Sequence record: MW879341.1
Direction: 5' to 3' (one strand)
DNA: 64,000 nt
Part shown: in pieces, positions 9,284-44,852 of the stretch
How the letters are laid out: each line of letters opens with the position of its first letter
Numbering within the stretch: the stretch's first letter is position 1
The notes under the pieces: model-generated
Databases searched by the model: none
The model's input: the letters and a program-made list of their open reading frames with translations, nothing else
Told to the model about the DNA's origin: nothing
Translations under genes and position numbers: made by a program

Positions 9284-9626
9284 GCAAGCATTTGTTTACG
9301 ACACCGAGCGAGTAGTTAATGAATTCTACAAATTGTTAGACAGCGTGAATTGTCCCGCCGCAATGACCATACCGGATACCGTGTTAGTGCAAGCGGTTAT
9401 GAACCAGGTTATGGGGTATTCCCCACATCGTGGTACAGCATCGCGGAGAGTATTGCATGATCTCCAACTGTTCGGTATACCGCCATTGGTCGCCGAGGAC
9501 TTATTCAATCAACTGTGTACAATAATAAGCCAGAGACTACAGTCATTGTTAGGTAGAGCTCCTTTCAGAACTGAGCATCAATGGCGACATGTAGACGACA
9601 CAAGCATTTTAATAATGGAGCAATAG
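9267..9626 (+). CDS. hypothetical protein (array member)
   Basis: Overlap-coupled ORF; helical body with a C-terminal beta-hairpin pattern. Confidence 0.65.
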   Translation: MKLEYKQAFVYDTERVVNEFYKLLDSVNCPAAMTIPDTVLVQAVMNQVMGYSPHRGTASRRVLHDLQLFGIPPLVAEDLFNQLCTIISQRLQSLLGRAPFRTEHQWRHVDDTSILIMEQ

Positions 9627-10217
9627 ATGCACGACTCAGTCATTATCGTAATTGACGATACTGTACTGTGCGACTATCTGAGCATCCAACCCGCCACTTC
9701 TGCTTTCGAGCAGGAGTGGTTGATTATGCTCGCAATCGCACTATGGGATAATTCCCAAAGTAATGGGGACGCTGGGGAAGACTTAGGTCAGTGGTTAATG
9801 CGTTATTTACCAGCACACCATAACGAGACACTGTGCTTTATGTCAAGTTATACGAATGCGAACTACAGTGTGACGCTGTTGAATGTGGTTCGAATTATCA
9901 TCGATGTCGTTAATGATCTTGTAGAGTTGATTAACCGCCACTTTGATCGTGCGTTGTCAGGTTACGTGTATGCTGGAGGTTGGACTATCACCAGTATCCA
10001 CTTTGCAGACGGAGTGTACATTCGTTATGACAGGACCTATATCAATGAACTCCAAAGCGCCGCTGACAGCTTACTGCCTAGACTTGACCTCATACAGCGA
10101 AACGTTCAAGGCACATCTCGGGGTACTTTGGGATTCCGCACACAAAGAGTGTCTGGAGGCGATCGCCATCCTCTCACATCGCAGGTGGATAACCAATACC
10201 CATCTCGATTCCGTTAG
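9627..10217 (+). CDS. hypothetical protein (array member)
   Basis: GGAG SD. The last ~57 codons overlap the next ORF. Confidence 0.6.
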   Translation: MHDSVIIVIDDTVLCDYLSIQPATSAFEQEWLIMLAIALWDNSQSNGDAGEDLGQWLMRYLPAHHNETLCFMSSYTNANYSVTLLNVVRIIIDVVNDLVELINRHFDRALSGYVYAGGWTITSIHFADGVYIRYDRTYINELQSAADSLLPRLDLIQRNVQGTSRGTLGFRTQRVSGGDRHPLTSQVDNQYPSRFR

Positions 10218-16040: not shown

Positions 16041-18149
16041 ATGGCACTGAAACGTAACGAGTCAGATAAGGCCGACGGGTCTTCTGGCATGGGGTCATTA
16101 GGGGACGCGCTTTTAGAAGCCGCCGCCAAGAAACCAGACAGCGCCGTAGCTGGCGAATTGTTAGCTGGAGGTGAACGTTCACTGGAGTCGGGTAATGCAC
16201 AGGTAATTAACCCAGAGCCTGTAGCACAACCAATCCCAGCGGCTACACCAGTACAACCAGCGCCTACCGCTCGTCCTGTACAACCAGCAGCACCAACCCA
16301 TAACCACAATTCACAAACTTTCGAAAGCAAGGAACAAAAGATGGAACAAGTTAACGCATACTACGGTCTGGACGATTCTTACTCTGGCCTGAACCGTACT
16401 CTGGGTCTGACCTCTGGCGCTGTAGACGTCAACGAGTTCAAGAAGATCGCAGAGAGCATCCTGGAAAACGATCCGGCTGCATCTAAAAGCTCTTACGGCA
16501 AGCCTTCCTTTATTACTCTGGAAGCTGCTGCCCTGGGTCTGCCGTGCAACGCACTGGCGATCGTAATGAACGCACGTAACGGCGCACAGAACGTGCCGCT
16601 GGTTTACACCCTGCTGATGGAACCATCAGAGCCGCTGGCACCACGCGAATACAATGTAGGCAACTACACTGTTGAGCTGAAAGCTGTAACTGGCGATATC
16701 TACGGTGACGACTTCGCTCGTGCTGTGATGAACCACGTTAAGAAAGTGACCAACTCCGATGCCGATCCAATCGACACCGGCGCTAACGTTGTACCGAACG
16801 GCCTGAGCCTGAAGGACGACGAAAACGCAACTCACGTTCGCAGCATCCTGTTCTTCGCATTCGGCGCACTGAACACCGTTTCCGACGTAATGTTCGGTAC
16901 TCAGAAATTCCTGAGCCTGAAAGTGTCTGGCCAACAGCAGCTGCTGGCTAACATCAACTGGTCTGGCAAACAGCTGGAAACTGCTGCGGGTAACCCTATC
17001 CGTGCAGACATCGTGCTGACCACCACCAAGCGTGCTCGCTTCGACCGTAACCAGACTGCTGCACACGCTGCCGCAACTCGTCCGGTAACTGCGCTGGCTG
17101 CGTACATGGACCTGTTCTACGCACCACCGCGTATCGAAGAGAACCCGAACCAGCAGCAGTACGGCTACAGCAGCTACGGTATCCCTGCGGATGCTAAAGT
17201 AATGTGGTACCCACGTATGGTTATCACTCGCTGCCTGCCACTGGGCAAAGTGATCAACGTTGGTGAACTGCTGCTGACTCTGGCGACTGCTACCGTTATC
17301 GGTACCAAGCACACCTGGATCAACGGCTTCCGTCCGGTGCGTGGTCAGGTTGGTATCCACGACATCGGTGGTCTGGGTTGGGAACATGAGTTCGTGAAAG
17401 GCCAGCTGGCTCCTATCGATTCTCAGGACCCTAAATTCAGCCTGCCTGGTCTGCTGAGCCAGACTGTTGTAGACAACCTGTTCTACAGCATGGACATCGA
17501 CGAAGTTGGTGACCTGACCTGGCTGGAAAGCTCACTGCTGGCAATTGCCCGTGGTGGTGAAGAAGCTGCTGCTGCGAACGATTACATCATCGCCGCTGCA
17601 AACGCACTGACCGATAACAAGTTCTCTGAGTGCTACGACGTGACTCAGCCGATTCTGGTTAACGAAGTCGTGCGCGTACACACTGGCTACTACATGGAAG
17701 GTGACCAGAAAGTTGACCTGCGTAACATCGACCACCTGGCAGTCCTGAACATGACCGGTAAGAACGGTTTTGGTCTGGCACAGAAATGGTCTAACGCGCT
17801 GGTAGACTACCCGAACAACAACGCACTGTCTCAGCAGGAACGTCAGAACATCCTGGGTGAGCTGGCACCGAACGCTGTGATCAACGGCTACGCATCTCGC
17901 GTGACCTTCAACTCCGCGTTCCTGTTCGGTCTGGCGTCTGCGATCTCTAAAGCTGGCACCACTCTGGTTGTCAACGACGATGGCCGTCAGGCTACTCAGG
18001 AAGCTCGCGTGACTGCATCTTACGCGTCCTTCGGTCAGGGTAACGTGTACACCACCTCCCTGGTATCTCAAGGTTACGGCAATGGTCAGAACCGTTCTCC
18101 GCGTGCTGTACAGACTCCTGTGTCTGGCAACATCTGGGGCAACATCTAA
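16041..18149 (+). CDS. chmA: chimallin, the major phage-nucleus shell protein (phiKZ gp54 / 201phi2-1 gp105 family)
   Basis: Blocks GNPIRADIVL, HDIGGLG, GYY...DLRNIDHLAVLN and RVTFNSAF match the chimallin family. Sits directly upstream of the nvRNAP beta' gene, with an early promoter, extreme high-expression codon bias and a flexible C-terminal tail. Confidence 0.9.
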   Translation: MALKRNESDKADGSSGMGSLGDALLEAAAKKPDSAVAGELLAGGERSLESGNAQVINPEPVAQPIPAATPVQPAPTARPVQPAAPTHNHNSQTFESKEQKMEQVNAYYGLDDSYSGLNRTLGLTSGAVDVNEFKKIAESILENDPAASKSSYGKPSFITLEAAALGLPCNALAIVMNARNGAQNVPLVYTLLMEPSEPLAPREYNVGNYTVELKAVTGDIYGDDFARAVMNHVKKVTNSDADPIDTGANVVPNGLSLKDDENATHVRSILFFAFGALNTVSDVMFGTQKFLSLKVSGQQQLLANINWSGKQLETAAGNPIRADIVLTTTKRARFDRNQTAAHAAATRPVTALAAYMDLFYAPPRIEENPNQQQYGYSSYGIPADAKVMWYPRMVITRCLPLGKVINVGELLLTLATATVIGTKHTWINGFRPVRGQVGIHDIGGLGWEHEFVKGQLAPIDSQDPKFSLPGLLSQTVVDNLFYSMDIDEVGDLTWLESSLLAIARGGEEAAAANDYIIAAANALTDNKFSECYDVTQPILVNEVVRVHTGYYMEGDQKVDLRNIDHLAVLNMTGKNGFGLAQKWSNALVDYPNNNALSQQERQNILGELAPNAVINGYASRVTFNSAFLFGLASAISKAGTTLVVNDDGRQATQEARVTASYASFGQGNVYTTSLVSQGYGNGQNRSPRAVQTPVSGNIWGNI

Positions 18150-39654: not shown

Positions 39655-41196
39655 ATGGCCATAATGACCTTAGAGATCTACGGACAGAGTATTAAAGTGC
39701 TCTCCAAAGATAACTACGGTATTGCGTGCGCGCTTGAGTTTTGTCGTAGCATGATAAAGTACAAGATGGAAAACGTGGTAGACACCAGTCGACCCGGATA
39801 TCATGCCCAGATGGTGCGTGTGCCTGACTGTACCTATGCAGCTTCGCCGCTCAACCGAGCATTCTTTTGTATTCACATTGGACAGAGACAGGAGTTTCTT
39901 GCTTACCTGCAACGCTGTGGTATTCCGCAGGACCAGATAAAGATTGTAGAAGTCCCTAAGTATAAGGCTACACCGGCCAAGTTGAAGATGAAAGATTTCT
40001 GGGTGGATAAACCACACCAGACGCCAATCATCGAATACGTAATTGATGGTGAGTCTTTGAAGATCCTACCCGTTCAGACAGGTGGGGGAAAGACGTATAT
40101 GGCATTGAAAGCCGCCAGTATCTTTGGTGAGCGATTCATGCTTGTTACGCGCGGTGGTTATATTGATAAGTGGATTGAAGACGTTAAGAAAACGTACGAT
40201 ATCGACGACTCAAGAATCATCGTTATCAAAGGCGAGAAAGCCTTGATGCGGGCAATCGAACTTGCTAAGGCTGGCGATTTCGATTACGACGTACTGTTAG
40301 TATCGACCGGTGGGTTAGCCGACTATATCAAACACTACGAGCAGTATCTAGGAACAGAACTGGGCGACCTGTATCTGGACCCTCGTGCGCTCGGTATGTT
40401 GTTTGGTGTTGGCCTGCGTATCGTGGATGAAGCTCACCAGATGCTTCACATGTACTATCGCATCGACTTGTACAGCCACTTCAACAAAGTGTTGTTCTTG
40501 TCAGCGACCATCATCGGTAACGATGCTATGGAGAAACGTATCCACGAGATTATCTACCCTACAGCGAAACGCTATACTGGGGCAGAGTGGAAGTGTTACA
40601 TTGTGGCAACTGCATTACGCTACAATCTGAACGAACCACACAAAGCACGCTTCAAAGACCACCGGAAGAACTATTCGCATGTAGTGTATGAACAGTACCT
40701 CATGCGTAATAAGGAGAAGCTCAAGAACTACCTGAATATGGTGGGGAACTTAGCCTACGACTTCTTTAAGAATCGTAAGCCGGGTCAAAAGTATCTGATC
40801 TTTGCTTCAACCGTTGACATGTGTAATGTGATGGTTGCAGATTTAAAGAAACGATTCCCTCATCTTAAAGTGGGTCGCTACGTTGCCGAGGATAACCTTG
40901 AGGATATCTACGAATACGATTTAACAGTGACTACTCCGGGTTCAGGTGGTACGGGCATCGACATCCCAGATCTGGCAGCAGCCCTCGCTACGTCGAGTGT
41001 CAGTTCAGGGAAGTTGAACATCCAGATGCTTGGTCGTCTGCGTGAACTCAAGAACTACCCGGGTGAGTTCCCAGAGTATCAGTATCTGGTCTGCTCCGAC
41101 ATTCCTAAGCAGGTTGAGTACCATAAACAAAAGTACGAACTGTTCCAAGGAAAAGTAAAAACGCATCGGGAACAAATGACCGGCGCGTCAGTGTAA
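39655..41196 (+). CDS. superfamily 2 (DEAH) helicase (phiKZ gp75/UvsW-like)
   Basis: QTGGGKT, IVDEAH, SAT and QMLGRLR motifs. Confidence 0.92.
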   Translation: MAIMTLEIYGQSIKVLSKDNYGIACALEFCRSMIKYKMENVVDTSRPGYHAQMVRVPDCTYAASPLNRAFFCIHIGQRQEFLAYLQRCGIPQDQIKIVEVPKYKATPAKLKMKDFWVDKPHQTPIIEYVIDGESLKILPVQTGGGKTYMALKAASIFGERFMLVTRGGYIDKWIEDVKKTYDIDDSRIIVIKGEKALMRAIELAKAGDFDYDVLLVSTGGLADYIKHYEQYLGTELGDLYLDPRALGMLFGVGLRIVDEAHQMLHMYYRIDLYSHFNKVLFLSATIIGNDAMEKRIHEIIYPTAKRYTGAEWKCYIVATALRYNLNEPHKARFKDHRKNYSHVVYEQYLMRNKEKLKNYLNMVGNLAYDFFKNRKPGQKYLIFASTVDMCNVMVADLKKRFPHLKVGRYVAEDNLEDIYEYDLTVTTPGSGGTGIDIPDLAAALATSSVSSGKLNIQMLGRLRELKNYPGEFPEYQYLVCSDIPKQVEYHKQKYELFQGKVKTHREQMTGASV

Positions 41197-41259
41197 TAGA
41201 GCCCACTCCGTCCTGTCCGGCGGAGTGGGTATTTATGTCTTTAATAAGGAAATACAGTT

Positions 41260-41763
41260 ATGTCAGATTTAATGAAAAGCATTACACGTCTTTGCAACAA
41301 ACAGAACTTAGACAAGCGCCTGAAGAAGATCGATCCGTACGATTCCACACTAAGCTCTGAAGATAAAGCGTTGGTGTTCTCAGCGTGTCGTATTAGTGAG
41401 GAGTACTTTTGCCTTATTGTTCGCAATGCACCTTCCACGATGCGTTTGGTGACGCCTGAGTTAGTATCTGGCGGTGTTAAGCAGCTTGTTTTAGAAGGCA
41501 GTGAGTTTGAACGCGTATTGTTGGACGTTCTGCGCGAATCTGAAATACAAGTAGCTAGCCTCAGCGCTCCTTCTATTAAAGCGTGGCTCTTTGACTCGGG
41601 CGATTTGGCCGTTCTGTTGAAGCAGTCAACGCGTCGTCGGGGAGTTAAGGTCTTTATAAAGACAGACCCTGTTGTGATTACACGCAACGGTGCCACGTTC
41701 ACAGATTCTGAACTGACCAGTTTGGACATCGCTACACTGTTTGATTGTGATTGGGTGGAGTAA
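41260..41763 (+). CDS. hypothetical protein
   Basis: AAGGA SD; first gene of the inserted cassette. Confidence 0.7.
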   Translation: MSDLMKSITRLCNKQNLDKRLKKIDPYDSTLSSEDKALVFSACRISEEYFCLIVRNAPSTMRLVTPELVSGGVKQLVLEGSEFERVLLDVLRESEIQVASLSAPSIKAWLFDSGDLAVLLKQSTRRRGVKVFIKTDPVVITRNGATFTDSELTSLDIATLFDCDWVE

Positions 41764-42290
41764 TGGCTTTTACACCGAATAACATGTTCGCCTATGAAAT
41801 CCTAATAGGTTTGATAGATGGGCAACAACCCTCGGACATCGAGCATCGTCACGGTATAACGGGCCGAACGAGTATCAGTAACTGGACGTCACGTCAATTT
41901 GGCTTGACGCCAAAGCAACTGGTAAGCAAAGTTCTGCGTAATGAACTCGGTGTTGCTAAAGGTGATGTCTCATACGTCTCAGGAAGCTCTGAGAATAGAC
42001 ATCTCCTAGCTGTAATACTAGAGGGTGAATTTATGCGTGAGCACCGTAGCGCGCTTCCTAGAGGTGAGTATCACATCTGGGCGTTCTCGGGTCTTATCTG
42101 CGTTCAATGTTCTACGCACTATCCTGAAACAAGGAAAGTGTATCGTCGTATTTATCAGACGAAGAAACCAATCGGAGAACTCTCCGATATCCGAATCCGT
42201 AAAATCTCACCAAGCTGGACTGAGTACCAAGTTACACCTCAGGATATCGCAGCACAGTTTGGTATTATCTGGTTCCCTAACGAGGATTAA
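41763..42290 (+). CDS. array protein A1: HTH-like N-terminus plus CxxCxxH domain
   Basis: SISNWTSRQFGLTPKQL and GEYHIWAFSGLICVQCSTHY; paralog of 43291-43845. Confidence 0.75.
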   Translation: MAFTPNNMFAYEILIGLIDGQQPSDIEHRHGITGRTSISNWTSRQFGLTPKQLVSKVLRNELGVAKGDVSYVSGSSENRHLLAVILEGEFMREHRSALPRGEYHIWAFSGLICVQCSTHYPETRKVYRRIYQTKKPIGELSDIRIRKISPSWTEYQVTPQDIAAQFGIIWFPNED

Positions 42291-42294
42291 AAGA

Positions 42295-42783
42295 ATGAGC
42301 TTTAACAACATTGCAATCTCCCCTATTAAAGAGCACGTAGACGGCGTGTGTGAAACGACACCTATCGGTAATGCTAACTTCTGGACAGTCTACGGCGTGG
42401 GCGCTGATGGTCTCTCAGAGGCTCTGGTGGACGTTGTTAACCAGCAGGCGGCAGTTGACTATGCTCAAAGACATTACCCACGTCTTCCAATCATGCAGTT
42501 GGTACCAGACCGACTCCCAGCCGTCGTCAACGCACCACCACTCAACTACATGGGTTATGAAGTGGTTCCGTTCGCGACTAACGCTGCAAGTGGTGACGAG
42601 CATCCAGTAAGCGACGAACAGTGGGCTGAGTTCTGGGGTCTGTGCGCAGTACATCAGAACGATGCATACACCATTCTGGCTAAACACGACACACGCATGG
42701 GTAGCGAACTGCTGTTGCGTGAGTTGGTGCGTCCTCGCGTTGATCTGCCTGTGGATAATCTGGAGTCTGACTTTACCGACTAA
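42295..42783 (+). CDS. array protein B1, ending LPVDNLESDFTD
   Basis: ATG at 42295 with GAGGA upstream; two internal EQ/xW modules. Confidence 0.75.
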   Translation: MSFNNIAISPIKEHVDGVCETTPIGNANFWTVYGVGADGLSEALVDVVNQQAAVDYAQRHYPRLPIMQLVPDRLPAVVNAPPLNYMGYEVVPFATNAASGDEHPVSDEQWAEFWGLCAVHQNDAYTILAKHDTRMGSELLLRELVRPRVDLPVDNLESDFTD

Positions 42784-42793
42784 GGGGCGTTGC

Positions 42794-43291
42794 GTGGAAT
42801 TTACCAACATTATCATAGAGCCCGTTAAGTGGAACCCTAGAGGTTTCTTTAATGAGGTTTGTGAGTTAGGTCAGCAGGACGCTTGGGAAGTGGTGGGTAT
42901 CACTAAACATAATCGTCGTGTGATACTGGGTGAGGCCGCTACGCAAAAGTCAGCATTGGCATTTGCGGCAGGTCACTCTACCGAGGTCACTCACGGTGTG
43001 TGGAATCACTTCAATAAAGGAAGTACTATCACACAGCGTGTCCCGTCCGATACTCAATTGATCTACGGTTCGCACTCAGACTTCCCACCCACTAAGGCTT
43101 ACGGCATTAGAAGGGTCTCTGACGAACAGTGGGACGTTATTCAGGTTGATGAGAATAAACGTGGGGAGAGTAACGAGCCGGTTGTTATTTCCACGCACCC
43201 TGAGTGGGGACAGGCAAACGGTGCAGCAGTATTGAAAATGGACGGCGTAGTTTTGCCGTCTGATAATCTGGATTCGGAGTATACGGACTAA
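42794..43291 (+). CDS. array protein B2, ending LPSDNLDSEYTD
   Basis: GTG at 42794 with AAGGGG SD; N-terminus aligns with B1 and B3. Confidence 0.75.
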   Translation: MEFTNIIIEPVKWNPRGFFNEVCELGQQDAWEVVGITKHNRRVILGEAATQKSALAFAAGHSTEVTHGVWNHFNKGSTITQRVPSDTQLIYGSHSDFPPTKAYGIRRVSDEQWDVIQVDENKRGESNEPVVISTHPEWGQANGAAVLKMDGVVLPSDNLDSEYTD

Positions 43292-43845
43292 TGGCTGTTG
43301 TTAAAGATATCTATGCTAATCTGAACGTTCGCAAGATAGACATACTGATGGCATTGCGCGACGGGTGGAAACTCACTGACATTGAGTCTCGTTATGACAT
43401 GGGTCGTAGCGCTAGAATCTCTAAGTGGTTGAAACTCTGCTACGGTCGAACGTTTGCAGAACTGCGTAAAGAGTTAGAGAATAACACCACTGCAATTACG
43501 TTTGGTGAAGTCTACTACGCTATGGCTACGCCTGAGCTTATCAATGACATCGCCATGAACCTTGAACTCAAGTCTAACCCGGCCGGTGTGAAAGAAATGC
43601 CAACCGGGCAGTACCACATCTGGTTGTTTGACGATCTGGTCTGTGTGCAGTGTAATAGACACTACGGTAGTCCAATCGGTACATACAAACGTATCTATCG
43701 GACTCGGTTGAATACTGATGACTATCCACCGGGTGCATTGGCTATCCGTAGTCCAACTAACACCAACATCCCAATGATGGCTGAAGACGTCGCTGATATC
43801 TTTGGCTTACTCTGGGTTCCAAGGGGATCGCATGTTAAATATTAG
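43291..43845 (+). CDS. array protein A2: HTH-like N-terminus plus CxxCxxH domain
   Basis: ARISKWLKLCYGRTFAEL and GQYHIWLFDDLVCVQCNRHY. Confidence 0.75.
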   Translation: MAVVKDIYANLNVRKIDILMALRDGWKLTDIESRYDMGRSARISKWLKLCYGRTFAELRKELENNTTAITFGEVYYAMATPELINDIAMNLELKSNPAGVKEMPTGQYHIWLFDDLVCVQCNRHYGSPIGTYKRIYRTRLNTDDYPPGALAIRSPTNTNIPMMAEDVADIFGLLWVPRGSHVKY

Positions 43846-44311
43846 TAAGGTGGTTATCTCACCCTCTAAACTCAATGTGCCGTCTGCGACATTTCTTCCA
43901 TGTTCTCCTGAACAGGCTGAACAGTGGGACGTCGTTGCGCACACGGATAAGGGTGTGATACTGCTTAACAACTGCCCAACGCAGTACTCAGCAATTGCAG
44001 TGGCCACGGCATATCAAACGCCTGACCAGACGCCCGCTATTCGTATGGTGGACAGTATCGGTGTGGAACGAACCATACCGAACGATTGTTTGCCACCGCA
44101 TCAGGAAGCACACTTCGTTGTGTTCAAAGAGGGTGACTATCAGGTAAGGTCGCAGCGGCAGTACGCCACAGCGGCAGTAAGGCAACAACCTGAATCTAAG
44201 GTGTTGTGTAGTCATGGTGGTTTTGATGCCATGGATTTGTGTCAGTTCGAATTAATCGATCGAACGTTAGCCTTACCTCTCGACAACTTAGAGTCGGAGT
44301 ACACTGACTAG
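43832..44311 (+). CDS. array protein B3, ending LPLDNLESEYTD
   Basis: ATG at 43832 with AAGGGG SD. Confidence 0.75.
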   Translation: MLNISKVVISPSKLNVPSATFLPCSPEQAEQWDVVAHTDKGVILLNNCPTQYSAIAVATAYQTPDQTPAIRMVDSIGVERTIPNDCLPPHQEAHFVVFKEGDYQVRSQRQYATAAVRQQPESKVLCSHGGFDAMDLCQFELIDRTLALPLDNLESEYTD

Positions 44312-44318
44312 ATAGACG

Positions 44319-44362
44319 GCATAAAAGCCCCTCTACCTTTTCGGGTAGAGGGGCAGCTATGT
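44319..44362. terminator. bidirectional terminator
   Basis: gcccctctacc/ggtagaggggc with gcata and tatgt flanks. Confidence 0.8.
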
Positions 44363-44375
44363 GCGTCTTTATTTT

Positions 44376-44852
44376 TTATCCTTCTCGAAGTTTCCTTTCT
44401 AACTCTCGAAGGTCTGCATCAGATGCCCCTTGCTTACCCACACCTAAAGCGCTGAGTCGTATAAGTTCTTCCGTGAACTCTCTGGGGAGATGCATGAATT
44501 GTATCAAGTCTAAGCCGAATCGATCTTTGATCGAGTGCTTAATATAACGACCTATCAGATTGTACAGCCCGCTGCCTTCGGTGTATCGTTCAGTGGGATG
44601 CATCGCCACTATACTGAGTGGGTTCGCATTTGGAGAGTTATGGTTAAAGATCCCGTAACTCTGTTCGTACGACTCCAACAGTAGAATGTCTAAGTCAACC
44701 CCACTGATGACATGGTCAACGTGAAACAGTAACGTACCTATTTCTGTACGTGATCGGTCTATATGACTGCCGAAGGTTGGGTCCGCAACGTGTCTGGCTA
44801 GATTGCGTTCAGGTCCTTCAGAGCCTGGTCGATCTTGTGGCGCTGAAGGGTC
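44376..44852 (-). CDS. gp76-like -1 frame extension of the gp77-like protein (tail-chaperone 'T' part)
   Basis: The frame is open from 44870 but has no start codon or SD until a TTG at 44678. It opens just before the slippery site. Confidence 0.65.
   Translation of the reverse strand, partial: DPSAPQDRPGSEGPERNLARHVADPTFGSHIDRSRTEIGTLLFHVDHVISGVDLDILLLESYEQSYGIFNHNSPNANPLSIVAMHPTERYTEGSGLYNLIGRYIKHSIKDRFGLDLIQFMHLPREFTEELIRLSALGVGKQGASDADLRELERKLREG

Follow-up and report, generated by a model that had tools for sequence, protein, structure and literature searches.

Three neighbouring genes of Erwinia phage pEa_SNUABM_54, named B1, B2 and B3, which judging from their sequences are tandem paralogues, encode proteins that end in the same acidic 12-residue tag, and we consider this tag, with a probability of about 0.5, to be a C-terminus-anchored docking peptide for one common putative receptor that would tie the diverged paralogues together. 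The window analysed is the terminal 64 kb of the phage genome (MW879341.1), which is 272 kb in total. It encodes a nuclear shell protein at 16041-18149 (phrog_4795 match, E = 9.5e-85), and the phage also encodes split RNA polymerase subunits, which identifies pEa_SNUABM_54 as a chimallivirus-type, nucleus-forming jumbo phage. The B genes are interleaved with a second family, A, in a cassette located in a variable region, downstream of a block of non-virion RNA polymerase and helicase genes, and the non-virion RNA polymerase subunits adjoin the cluster. The stops and starts of the A and B genes overlap or are closely spaced, and two terminator-like hairpins bracket the unit; it is therefore predicted to be a translationally coupled, terminator-bracketed operon in which A would be co-transcribed with B. 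The features of the unit are as follows.

41201..41230, plus strand: terminator-like hairpin (12-bp stem) that follows the helicase gene and bounds the unit of six A/B genes upstream
41260..41763, plus strand: A0, 167 aa, pI 5.4, more diverged than the other A paralogues; stop overlapping the start of A1
41763..42290, plus strand: A1, 175 aa, pI 8.6; in the model the N-terminal part is helical and the C-terminal part alpha/beta
42295..42783, plus strand: B1, 162 aa, pI 4.5
42745..42783, plus strand: tag copy 1 at the end of B1, LPVDNLESDFTD and stop (peptide 42745-42780)
42794..43291, plus strand: B2, GTG start, 165 aa, pI 5.1
43253..43291, plus strand: tag copy 2 at the end of B2, LPSDNLDSEYTD and stop (peptide 43253-43288); the stop overlaps the A2 start (TAATG)
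43291..43845, plus strand: A2, 184 aa, pI 8.4; AlphaFold2 mean pLDDT 80, pTM 0.72
43832..44311, plus strand: B3, 159 aa, pI 4.8; 14 nt overlap with the A2 end; absent in the L021/L007 lineage
44273..44311, plus strand: tag copy 3 at the end of B3, LPLDNLESEYTD and stop (peptide 44273-44308)
44327..44354, no strand assigned: terminator-like hairpin with an 11-bp stem, between B3 and convergent minus-strand genes; downstream edge of the A/B unit, and directly after A2 in the lineage without B3

The earlier note had reported that three B proteins keep the same 12-residue C-terminal tag. A six-frame regex search recovered all three sites with a stop codon directly after each, and all three copies terminate annotated CDSs of MW879341.1. 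The consensus of B1, B2 and B3 is [LI]PxDNL[ED]S[ED][FY]TD followed by the stop, and in five phage lineages the tag is the exact C-terminus of all 12 gene copies. Among the tag columns of the 12-copy alignment seven are invariant, four vary conservatively and one is free, and each of the invariant residues (P, D, N, L, S, T and D) is encoded by 2-3 synonymous codons. Invariant columns make up 7/12 of the tag versus 7/171 of the body (Fisher p = 1.9e-6). Between paralogues the tag is identical at 8-10 of 12 positions, and no other stretch of 12 columns in the paralogue alignment is as well conserved as the C-terminal one, with 75% mean pairwise identity versus 21-24% for the bodies. This lies well outside chance: the probability of at least 8 of 12 identities at p = 0.23 is 1.6e-3 per pair. 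The proportion of nonsynonymous differences (pN) is 0.11-0.19 in the tag versus 0.55-0.60 in the body, while pS is saturated in both (0.58-1.25 in the tag). The synonymous codon differences to which the earlier note pointed are thus real, and together with the low pN and saturated pS of the tag they exclude a DNA repeat or gene conversion and show that the tag is kept by purifying selection on the peptide. In this respect, conserved against its flanks through selection on the peptide, it behaves as a short linear motif.

The statement that the rest of the proteins align only weakly also holds. After removal of the tag, BLASTP aligns B1 with B2 and B2 with B3 at E = 2e-6, mainly via the N-terminal domain, and gives no significant match between B1 and B3 (E = 0.18). 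The proteins are acidic (net charge -9 to -14), and B1 consists of an N-terminal alpha/beta domain (residues 1-70), a paralogue-specific middle part and a tail modelled as unstructured. In the middle part, about 80 residues, similarity between paralogues is no longer recognisable (profile-profile probabilities <5%), and identity inside the orthologue groups is 77-89% for B1 and B3 and 53-55% for B2. As the middle parts are conserved within groups and dissimilar between them, each paralogue has a distinct body under its own constraint, and the tail is common to all three. Since the carriers are tandem paralogues with a common N-terminal domain, the tag was inherited and retained rather than separately gained.

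The N-terminal domain belongs to a wider family. Residues 16-59 of B1 match phrog_23974 (E = 4.6e-8); B2 and B3 do not match this PHROG directly and are linked by the family profile (1e-30 to 2e-32) and by mutual BLASTP, and the PHROGs gave, besides the B1 N-domain, one weak B3 match (E = 0.017). The domain is also found alone in proteins of 80-107 aa of other jumbo phages. These phrog_23974/JOAD_31-like relatives, found by profile search, end after the domain or have other extensions, and all of them lack both the tag and the middle part of B. Because the stand-alone homologues (JOAD_31, P0005, P0016-P0021) lack the tail, it is part of the B-specific extension, dispensable for the fold of the N-domain. 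A local hmmsearch of all ORFs found no further B or N-domain paralogue elsewhere in the genome.

Beyond this domain, both families are orphans: Pfam gave no credible match to any A or B member, PDB sequence profiles nothing credible for either family, and Foldseek no PDB fold match for the B1 and A2 models (best E = 0.4-0.6). The BFVD fold search recovered the N-domain only, in uncharacterised jumbo-phage proteins (rmsd about 2 Å); a 62-aa match labelled DUF1738 was set aside as too weak (E = 0.028). AlphaFold2 modelled the B1 N-domain confidently (pLDDT 80-90) and the C-terminal half poorly overall (pLDDT 46-60), and the last 17 residues (146-162) have no secondary structure and a pLDDT of about 40, below 50. 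As the underlying alignment comprised just 9 sequences and the model is poor throughout the C-terminal half, the modelled disorder of the tail is weak evidence.

The tag and its families are narrowly distributed. A proteome-wide pattern search, proposed by the earlier note, places the tag on no other ORF: in six frames of the whole 272-kb genome, allowing up to four substitutions, there is no other carrier among the ORFs. An internal 8/12 match in a 736-aa ORF was rejected, as by a rough estimate about one such chance match is expected. Nor did the tag occur beyond chance in IMG/VR, the JGI metagenomes or GTDB. The 9-residue pattern with a stop gave 0 matches in IMG/VR, where the pattern search also gave 10 matches, none of them a relative; the 7-residue core gave three matches, all in one 37-codon frame that is improbable as a real gene. 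The JGI metagenomes yielded two chance matches in GC-rich bacterial contigs, not at real gene ends, and 185,579 cellular genomes of GTDB yielded no tag match. In tblastn searches of 50,697 phage records the source phage was the sole match to B1 and A2, and P0005 additionally matched Joad and RisingSun weakly through the N-domain and two Streptomyces phages marginally (E 0.6). The A and B families are confined to one small set of related contigs, where they are always adjacent, and the B family appears from these searches to be restricted to one lineage of nucleus-forming jumbo phages of Erwinia. The tag is therefore not a portable one on non-homologous bodies, since its carriers have a homologous N-domain and no other ORF is tagged. 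Of the short linear address motif suggested in the earlier note, the exact C-terminal position and the conservation amid diverging flanks stand; the tag is confined to paralogues and is not a proteome-wide address.

The docking mechanism, the role of the free carboxylate and the identity of the receptor are all three what we infer from these observations. Each B protein would be a small acidic accessory protein composed of the N-domain, a paralogue-specific middle and a flexible tail. The free carboxylate of the terminal Asp, the acidic side chains and the hydrophobic Leu6 and Phe/Tyr10 would enter a pocket of the common receptor, and the tail may in this way recruit three functionally diverged bodies to a single site or machine. 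The leading candidate for the receptor would be the A family (A0, A1 and A2), because it lies in the same operon and has exactly the same narrow distribution; docking of the tag to A proteins is plausible on these genomic grounds, and a conserved hub of the phage or the host is an almost equally likely receptor. A1 and A2 are mildly basic, in contrast to the acidic B proteins, and all A paralogues have in common a basic segment, a beta-strand, in which one K/R column is invariant. The A paralogues are 16-30% identical to one another, while the tag is near-identical in all B paralogues, which speaks against A as the receptor; a tag that binds A would therefore have to use a putative pocket. The A:B stoichiometry, which also counts against A, varies from 3:3 (the window, L008 and L015) through 3:2 (L021/L007) to one intact A and one B (L009).

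Docking through a C-terminal peptide has several precedents. The tip of E. coli SSB (…DDDIPF) and the acidic tail of T7 gp2.5 dock these ssDNA-binding proteins onto their partners. Like the B tag, they are short, acidic, contain an aromatic residue, lie at the end of a tail (in B, one predicted to be flexible) and are much better conserved than the preceding linker; however, the SSB tip is unrelated in sequence and ends hydrophobic, whereas B ends Thr-Asp, and fold searches (PDB, BFVD) for an OB/SSB fold in B gave no match above noise. The EEVD-COOH tails of Hsp70 and Hsp90, bound by the TPR "carboxylate clamp", and the C-terminal ligands of PDZ type have in common with the B tag a terminal Asp that never varies and stands in fixed register with the free carboxyl end, along with acidic residues and one or two hydrophobic anchors. 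Recognition of this kind is what we propose for the tag, although these tails belong to eukaryotic chaperone systems and the likeness is in logic only. Among phages, the C-terminal tails of T4 gp43, gp33 and gp55 dock on the sliding clamp gp45, a precedent for several proteins of different activity that reach one hub through a common C-terminal peptide. In T4, however, unrelated proteins have the common tail, whereas the B tag is found in three paralogues only and lacks the clamp-binding consensus. E. coli Hfq has an acidic tip (…DSEETE) similar to …[ED]S[ED][FY]TD but lacking the aromatic residue, and as about one host protein is estimated to match as well by chance, this likeness was not relied on.

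A structural role for the tail, which would fold onto the B body or swap between subunits as an oligomer-locking C-terminal arm, is possible, though we consider it doubtful. With 11 of 12 positions constrained, the tag exceeds a typical docking motif and most short linear motifs, an observation that goes against docking and also fits a structural or enzyme-recognition element. The alternation L6-S8-[FY]10-D12, read from the sequence, would suit a beta-strand, and the C-terminal half is modelled too poorly to argue against packing. However, AlphaFold2 gives the tail neither secondary structure nor a confident contact, the parts against which it would putatively pack have diverged beyond recognition between paralogues while the tail has not, and homologues of the N-domain exist without it.

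It is unlikely that the tag is a subcellular address that directs B to the phage nucleus, the chimallin shell or the capsid. Sorting must exist in this phage, given its nuclear shell protein and the adjoining non-virion RNA polymerase subunits, and the tag is terminal and common to several proteins. On the other hand, dozens of proteins need import or packaging, and only the three paralogues of the 272-kb genome carry the tag, which is missing from the window's replication and transcription proteins. The N- and C-terminal segments of chimallin are dissimilar to the tag, and mimicry of its tails was rejected on inspection of the ChmA sequence, which has no resemblance. The PicA/Imp1 import system concerns the same kind of phage and the same question of how proteins are addressed, but its cargo is recognised via residues of the folded surface, not by a terminal signal sequence (PMC12908238), in contrast to the B tag, which is terminal and present on 3 of about 320 proteins. 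A role as nuclear import signal, for which no linear consensus is known, is thus unsupported and contrary to the published import rules. It seems more doubtful still that the tag is instead a linear targeting peptide, terminal and transferable, and the first of its kind in a nucleus-forming phage; it would then deliver paralogues that otherwise look unrelated to the shell, the import machinery or the nucleus interior, parallel to surface-patch licensing by PicA/Imp1.

A degron or protease-processing site, marking B for timed degradation or cleavage, would agree with the C-terminal position and strong conservation of the tag, and is nevertheless very improbable. The C-terminal degrons of the ssrA/ClpXP type end non-polar (…LAA-like), and -DD endings are the standard stable controls; the B tail is acidic, and all 12 copies end [FYC]-T-D, polar or acidic rather than non-polar. 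The cleavage consensus of the phiKZ-type prohead protease is [S/A/G]-x-E, and by inspection this pattern is absent from the tag. Finally, a feature at the DNA or RNA level (a gene-conversion repeat, or a regulatory or RNA element translated only by coincidence) would account for the 29-nt direct-repeat family at the three tag sites, but it is already refuted by the codon data and has practically no probability left, as the copies are only 76-83% identical as DNA with differences concentrated at synonymous sites, the pS of the tag is saturated like that of the bodies, the downstream contexts differ (a Shine-Dalgarno for B2, the overlapping A2 start and a terminator), and an Rfam search over the A/B cluster matched no known RNA family.

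Taken alone, the finding of the tag changes no current picture, as paralogues that keep a conserved C-terminal interaction tail are well known. The copy number of the A/B cassette rises and falls between close relatives, and such gain and loss is behaviour typical of host-interaction genes. If the tail is a docking peptide, it would offer a simple way into this orphan accessory cassette of six genes in a nucleus-forming jumbo phage: the 12 residues could serve as bait for the receptor, and the receptor in turn may lead to the function of the three diverged paralogues.

The three B genes, which encode small acidic proteins, end in a common 12-residue peptide (the tag), each copy lying where the earlier note had placed it (42745-42783, 43253-43291 and 44273-44311) and followed directly by a stop codon. 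The genes are clustered in the order A0-A1-B1-B2-A2-B3, so that B genes are interleaved with paralogues of a second family, A, and stop and start codons at the junctions overlap or are 4-11 nt apart.

Features of the A/B unit (window positions)
41201-41230, terminator-like hairpin, upstream edge of the six-gene unit
41260-41763, A0 gene, paralogue of the second family
41763-42290, A1 gene, paralogue of the second family
42295-42783, B1 gene, annotated; ends in tag and stop
42794-43291, B2 gene, annotated; GTG start; ends in tag and stop
43291-43845, A2 gene, paralogue of the second family
43832-44311, B3 gene, annotated; ends in tag and stop
44327-44354, terminator-like hairpin, downstream edge of the six-gene unit

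The bodies of the B paralogues are 21-24% identical, against 8-10 of 12 residues in the tag, and the best-conserved 12-column window of the paralogue alignment is its last 12 columns. Orthologues gathered from related assemblies gave 12 gene copies from five lineages, all 12 with an exact C-terminal [LI]PxDNL[ED]S[ED][FY]TD; in a thirteenth copy outside this set, the B2 orthologue of the related contig L007, the aromatic position is Cys. Pro2, Asp4, Asn5, Leu6, Ser8, Thr11 and Asp12 never change, with two to three codons used for each, and position 3 is occupied by six different residues. In the 12-copy alignment, 7/12 tag columns are invariant versus 7/171 in the body (p = 1.9e-6). Among the paralogue pairs of the window, the non-synonymous proportion (pN) is 0.11-0.19 for the tag as against 0.55-0.60 for the body, with synonymous sites saturated in both. 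Because of these statistics and the codon variation, and because the tag DNA copies are only 76-83% identical, differ in their 3' sequence at all three sites and match no Rfam family, the proposal of selection on the peptide rather than a DNA repeat proved correct; a DNA-level feature is refuted by the codon data.

On sequence comparison, the tag carriers are related to one another as paralogues. Without their tags, B1 and B2, and likewise B2 and B3, still match at E = 2e-6, chiefly within the first ~65 residues; B1 and B3 do not match. AlphaFold2 modelled B1 residues 1-70 confidently (pLDDT 80-90; four strands, a helix and a strand) and the rest poorly (46-60), giving the final 17 residues a pLDDT <50 and no secondary structure. 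The N-terminal domain matches phrog_23974, BFVD models of Ralstonia and Erwinia jumbo-phage proteins (rmsd about 2 Å) and stand-alone proteins of 80-107 aa in other jumbo phages, e.g. JOAD_31 of Erwinia phage Joad; the tag is absent from all these relatives. The stand-alone family (P0005, P0016-P0021; L014:2941-3183), found in other jumbo-phage contigs, carries the motif ...CEVCEP.EA.FWSVYGH...GGVEC... and has no Pfam entry. The ~80 residues between N-terminal domain and tag are 89% identical among B1 orthologues, 77% among B3 and 53-55% among B2; between these groups there is no significant similarity, even profile against profile. The overall pattern is of three mutually diverged, individually constrained bodies with one common tail. 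An exact 13-nt repeat, GACGAACAGTGGG, which encodes DEQW, occurs in B1 (42613-42625) and B2 (43121-43133), its two copies 508 nt apart, as are the tags of these genes, and constitutes a second, weaker conserved mid-protein motif, [VR]S..Q[WY].

A proteome-wide search, as the earlier note had suggested, run in six frames on the complete phage genome, recovered the tag in the three B genes and in no other; one internal 8/12 match elsewhere is at chance level by our rough estimate. The back-translated pattern DNL[ED]S[ED][YFC]TD plus stop had no match in IMG/VR or in 185,579 bacterial and archaeal species (one genome each). Two matches of this pattern in JGI metagenomes fell outside real gene ends and were rejected as chance, and for a shorter core the sole match was a 37-codon frame judged spurious. 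When 1.84 billion representative proteins were searched with a profile, five were returned: the three paralogues or orthologues close to them, a B2 that has diverged, and a protein with the N-domain alone. Since these searches found no carrier outside the B family, the idea of a proteome-wide address was not borne out; on this evidence the tag is a family-specific tail and no copy of a cellular C-terminus.

The A proteins (167-185 aa) gave a better model than B (pLDDT 80, pTM 0.72), helical towards the N-terminus and alpha/beta towards the C-terminus. By eye the modelled helical part resembles a helix-turn-helix, with no profile match in support, and the family has no relatives in Pfam, PDB sequences or PDB folds. 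Their C-termini (41730-41760 in A0, 42255-42285 in A1, 43800-43830 in A2) share a conserved segment, D[IV]A..F....W, modelled with reasonable confidence as helix and strand and probably part of the fold, not a free tail. A1 and A2 are mildly basic and the B proteins strongly acidic; both families have an identical, very narrow distribution and are adjacent in every case.

Cassette copy number differs among close relatives, with one to three B copies. Related assemblies L008 and L015 have all six genes. The L021/L007 lineage (ERR3943981; JGI 3300009944) lacks B3 with exact edges: at L021:5540-5610 the terminator hairpin located after B3 in the window (44300-44360) comes immediately behind the A2 stop codon. 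In L009 (ERR7764201 contig, 9470-10000), B1, B2 and the N-terminal part of A2 are deleted, so that A1, cut after ...GLICV, runs into the C-terminal portion of A2 with the frame shifted by one base. The arrangement has the look of a recombination event between A paralogues, but an assembly or sequencing error is also possible. Because other chimalliviruses carry unrelated small genes at this position downstream of the helicase, it is a variable accessory region.

The tag is a terminal, peptide-selected segment common to diverged paralogues, always in exact C-terminal register, and probably flexible. We suggest, with a probability of about 0.5, that it acts as a docking peptide, which would be recognised along with its free carboxylate and would tie the three B bodies to one receptor; that it is nearly identical in the paralogues favours a single receptor surface. 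Operon structure and co-distribution make the A proteins the best candidates for that receptor, tentatively, and a conserved phage or host hub is about as likely; against A stand the mutual identity of its paralogues, only 16-30%, and an A:B ratio that is not fixed. Among the alternatives, a structural or oligomerisation arm seems an unlikely role. A localisation signal is more doubtful still, as the tag occurs on only 3 of about 320 proteins and import is reported to make no use of terminal signals (PMC12908238); that it is the first terminal targeting peptide in a nucleus-forming phage is less probable again. A degron or cleavage site is very improbable, the -T-D end being opposite to known C-terminal degrons.

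Window positions 41200-44400 match Erwinia phage pEa_SNUABM_54 (MW879341.1; 272,635 bp; host Erwinia amylovora) with 100% identity, and the window makes up the final 64 kb of that record. All six A/B genes and every neighbouring CDS shown are annotated there as 'hypothetical protein'. Within the window, PHROG profiles revealed the following feature,

16041-18149, nuclear shell protein (chimallin), phrog_4795, E = 9.5e-85

as well as several split RNA polymerase beta-type subunits, two DNA polymerase parts and a helicase, and on this gene content we classify the phage as a nucleus-forming jumbo phage of chimallivirus type. Within this type it is remote, as no other phage record has a helicase more than 35% identical to its own. 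The chimallin homologue has a ~100-residue Pro/Ala/Gln-rich N-terminal extension, the profile match beginning at residue 68. The helicase upstream of the cassette has 513 aa and no insert in the window (39655-41196) and L008, and 858-862 aa with a LAGLIDADG_3 Pfam match in two related assemblies (L009:6321-8897; L015:1-2403), apparently a polymorphic insertion of an intein or homing endonuclease.

In logic the tag is similar to the SSB C-terminal tip, EEVD-type carboxylate-clamp ligands and the shared clamp-binding tails of T4 proteins, but it belongs to none of these families, because sequence, terminal residue and body fold do not fit. By the searches made here, the A and B proteins are orphans, and no equivalent of the motif turned up in the collections covered. 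A common tail on diverged paralogues is in itself a phenomenon of a familiar kind.
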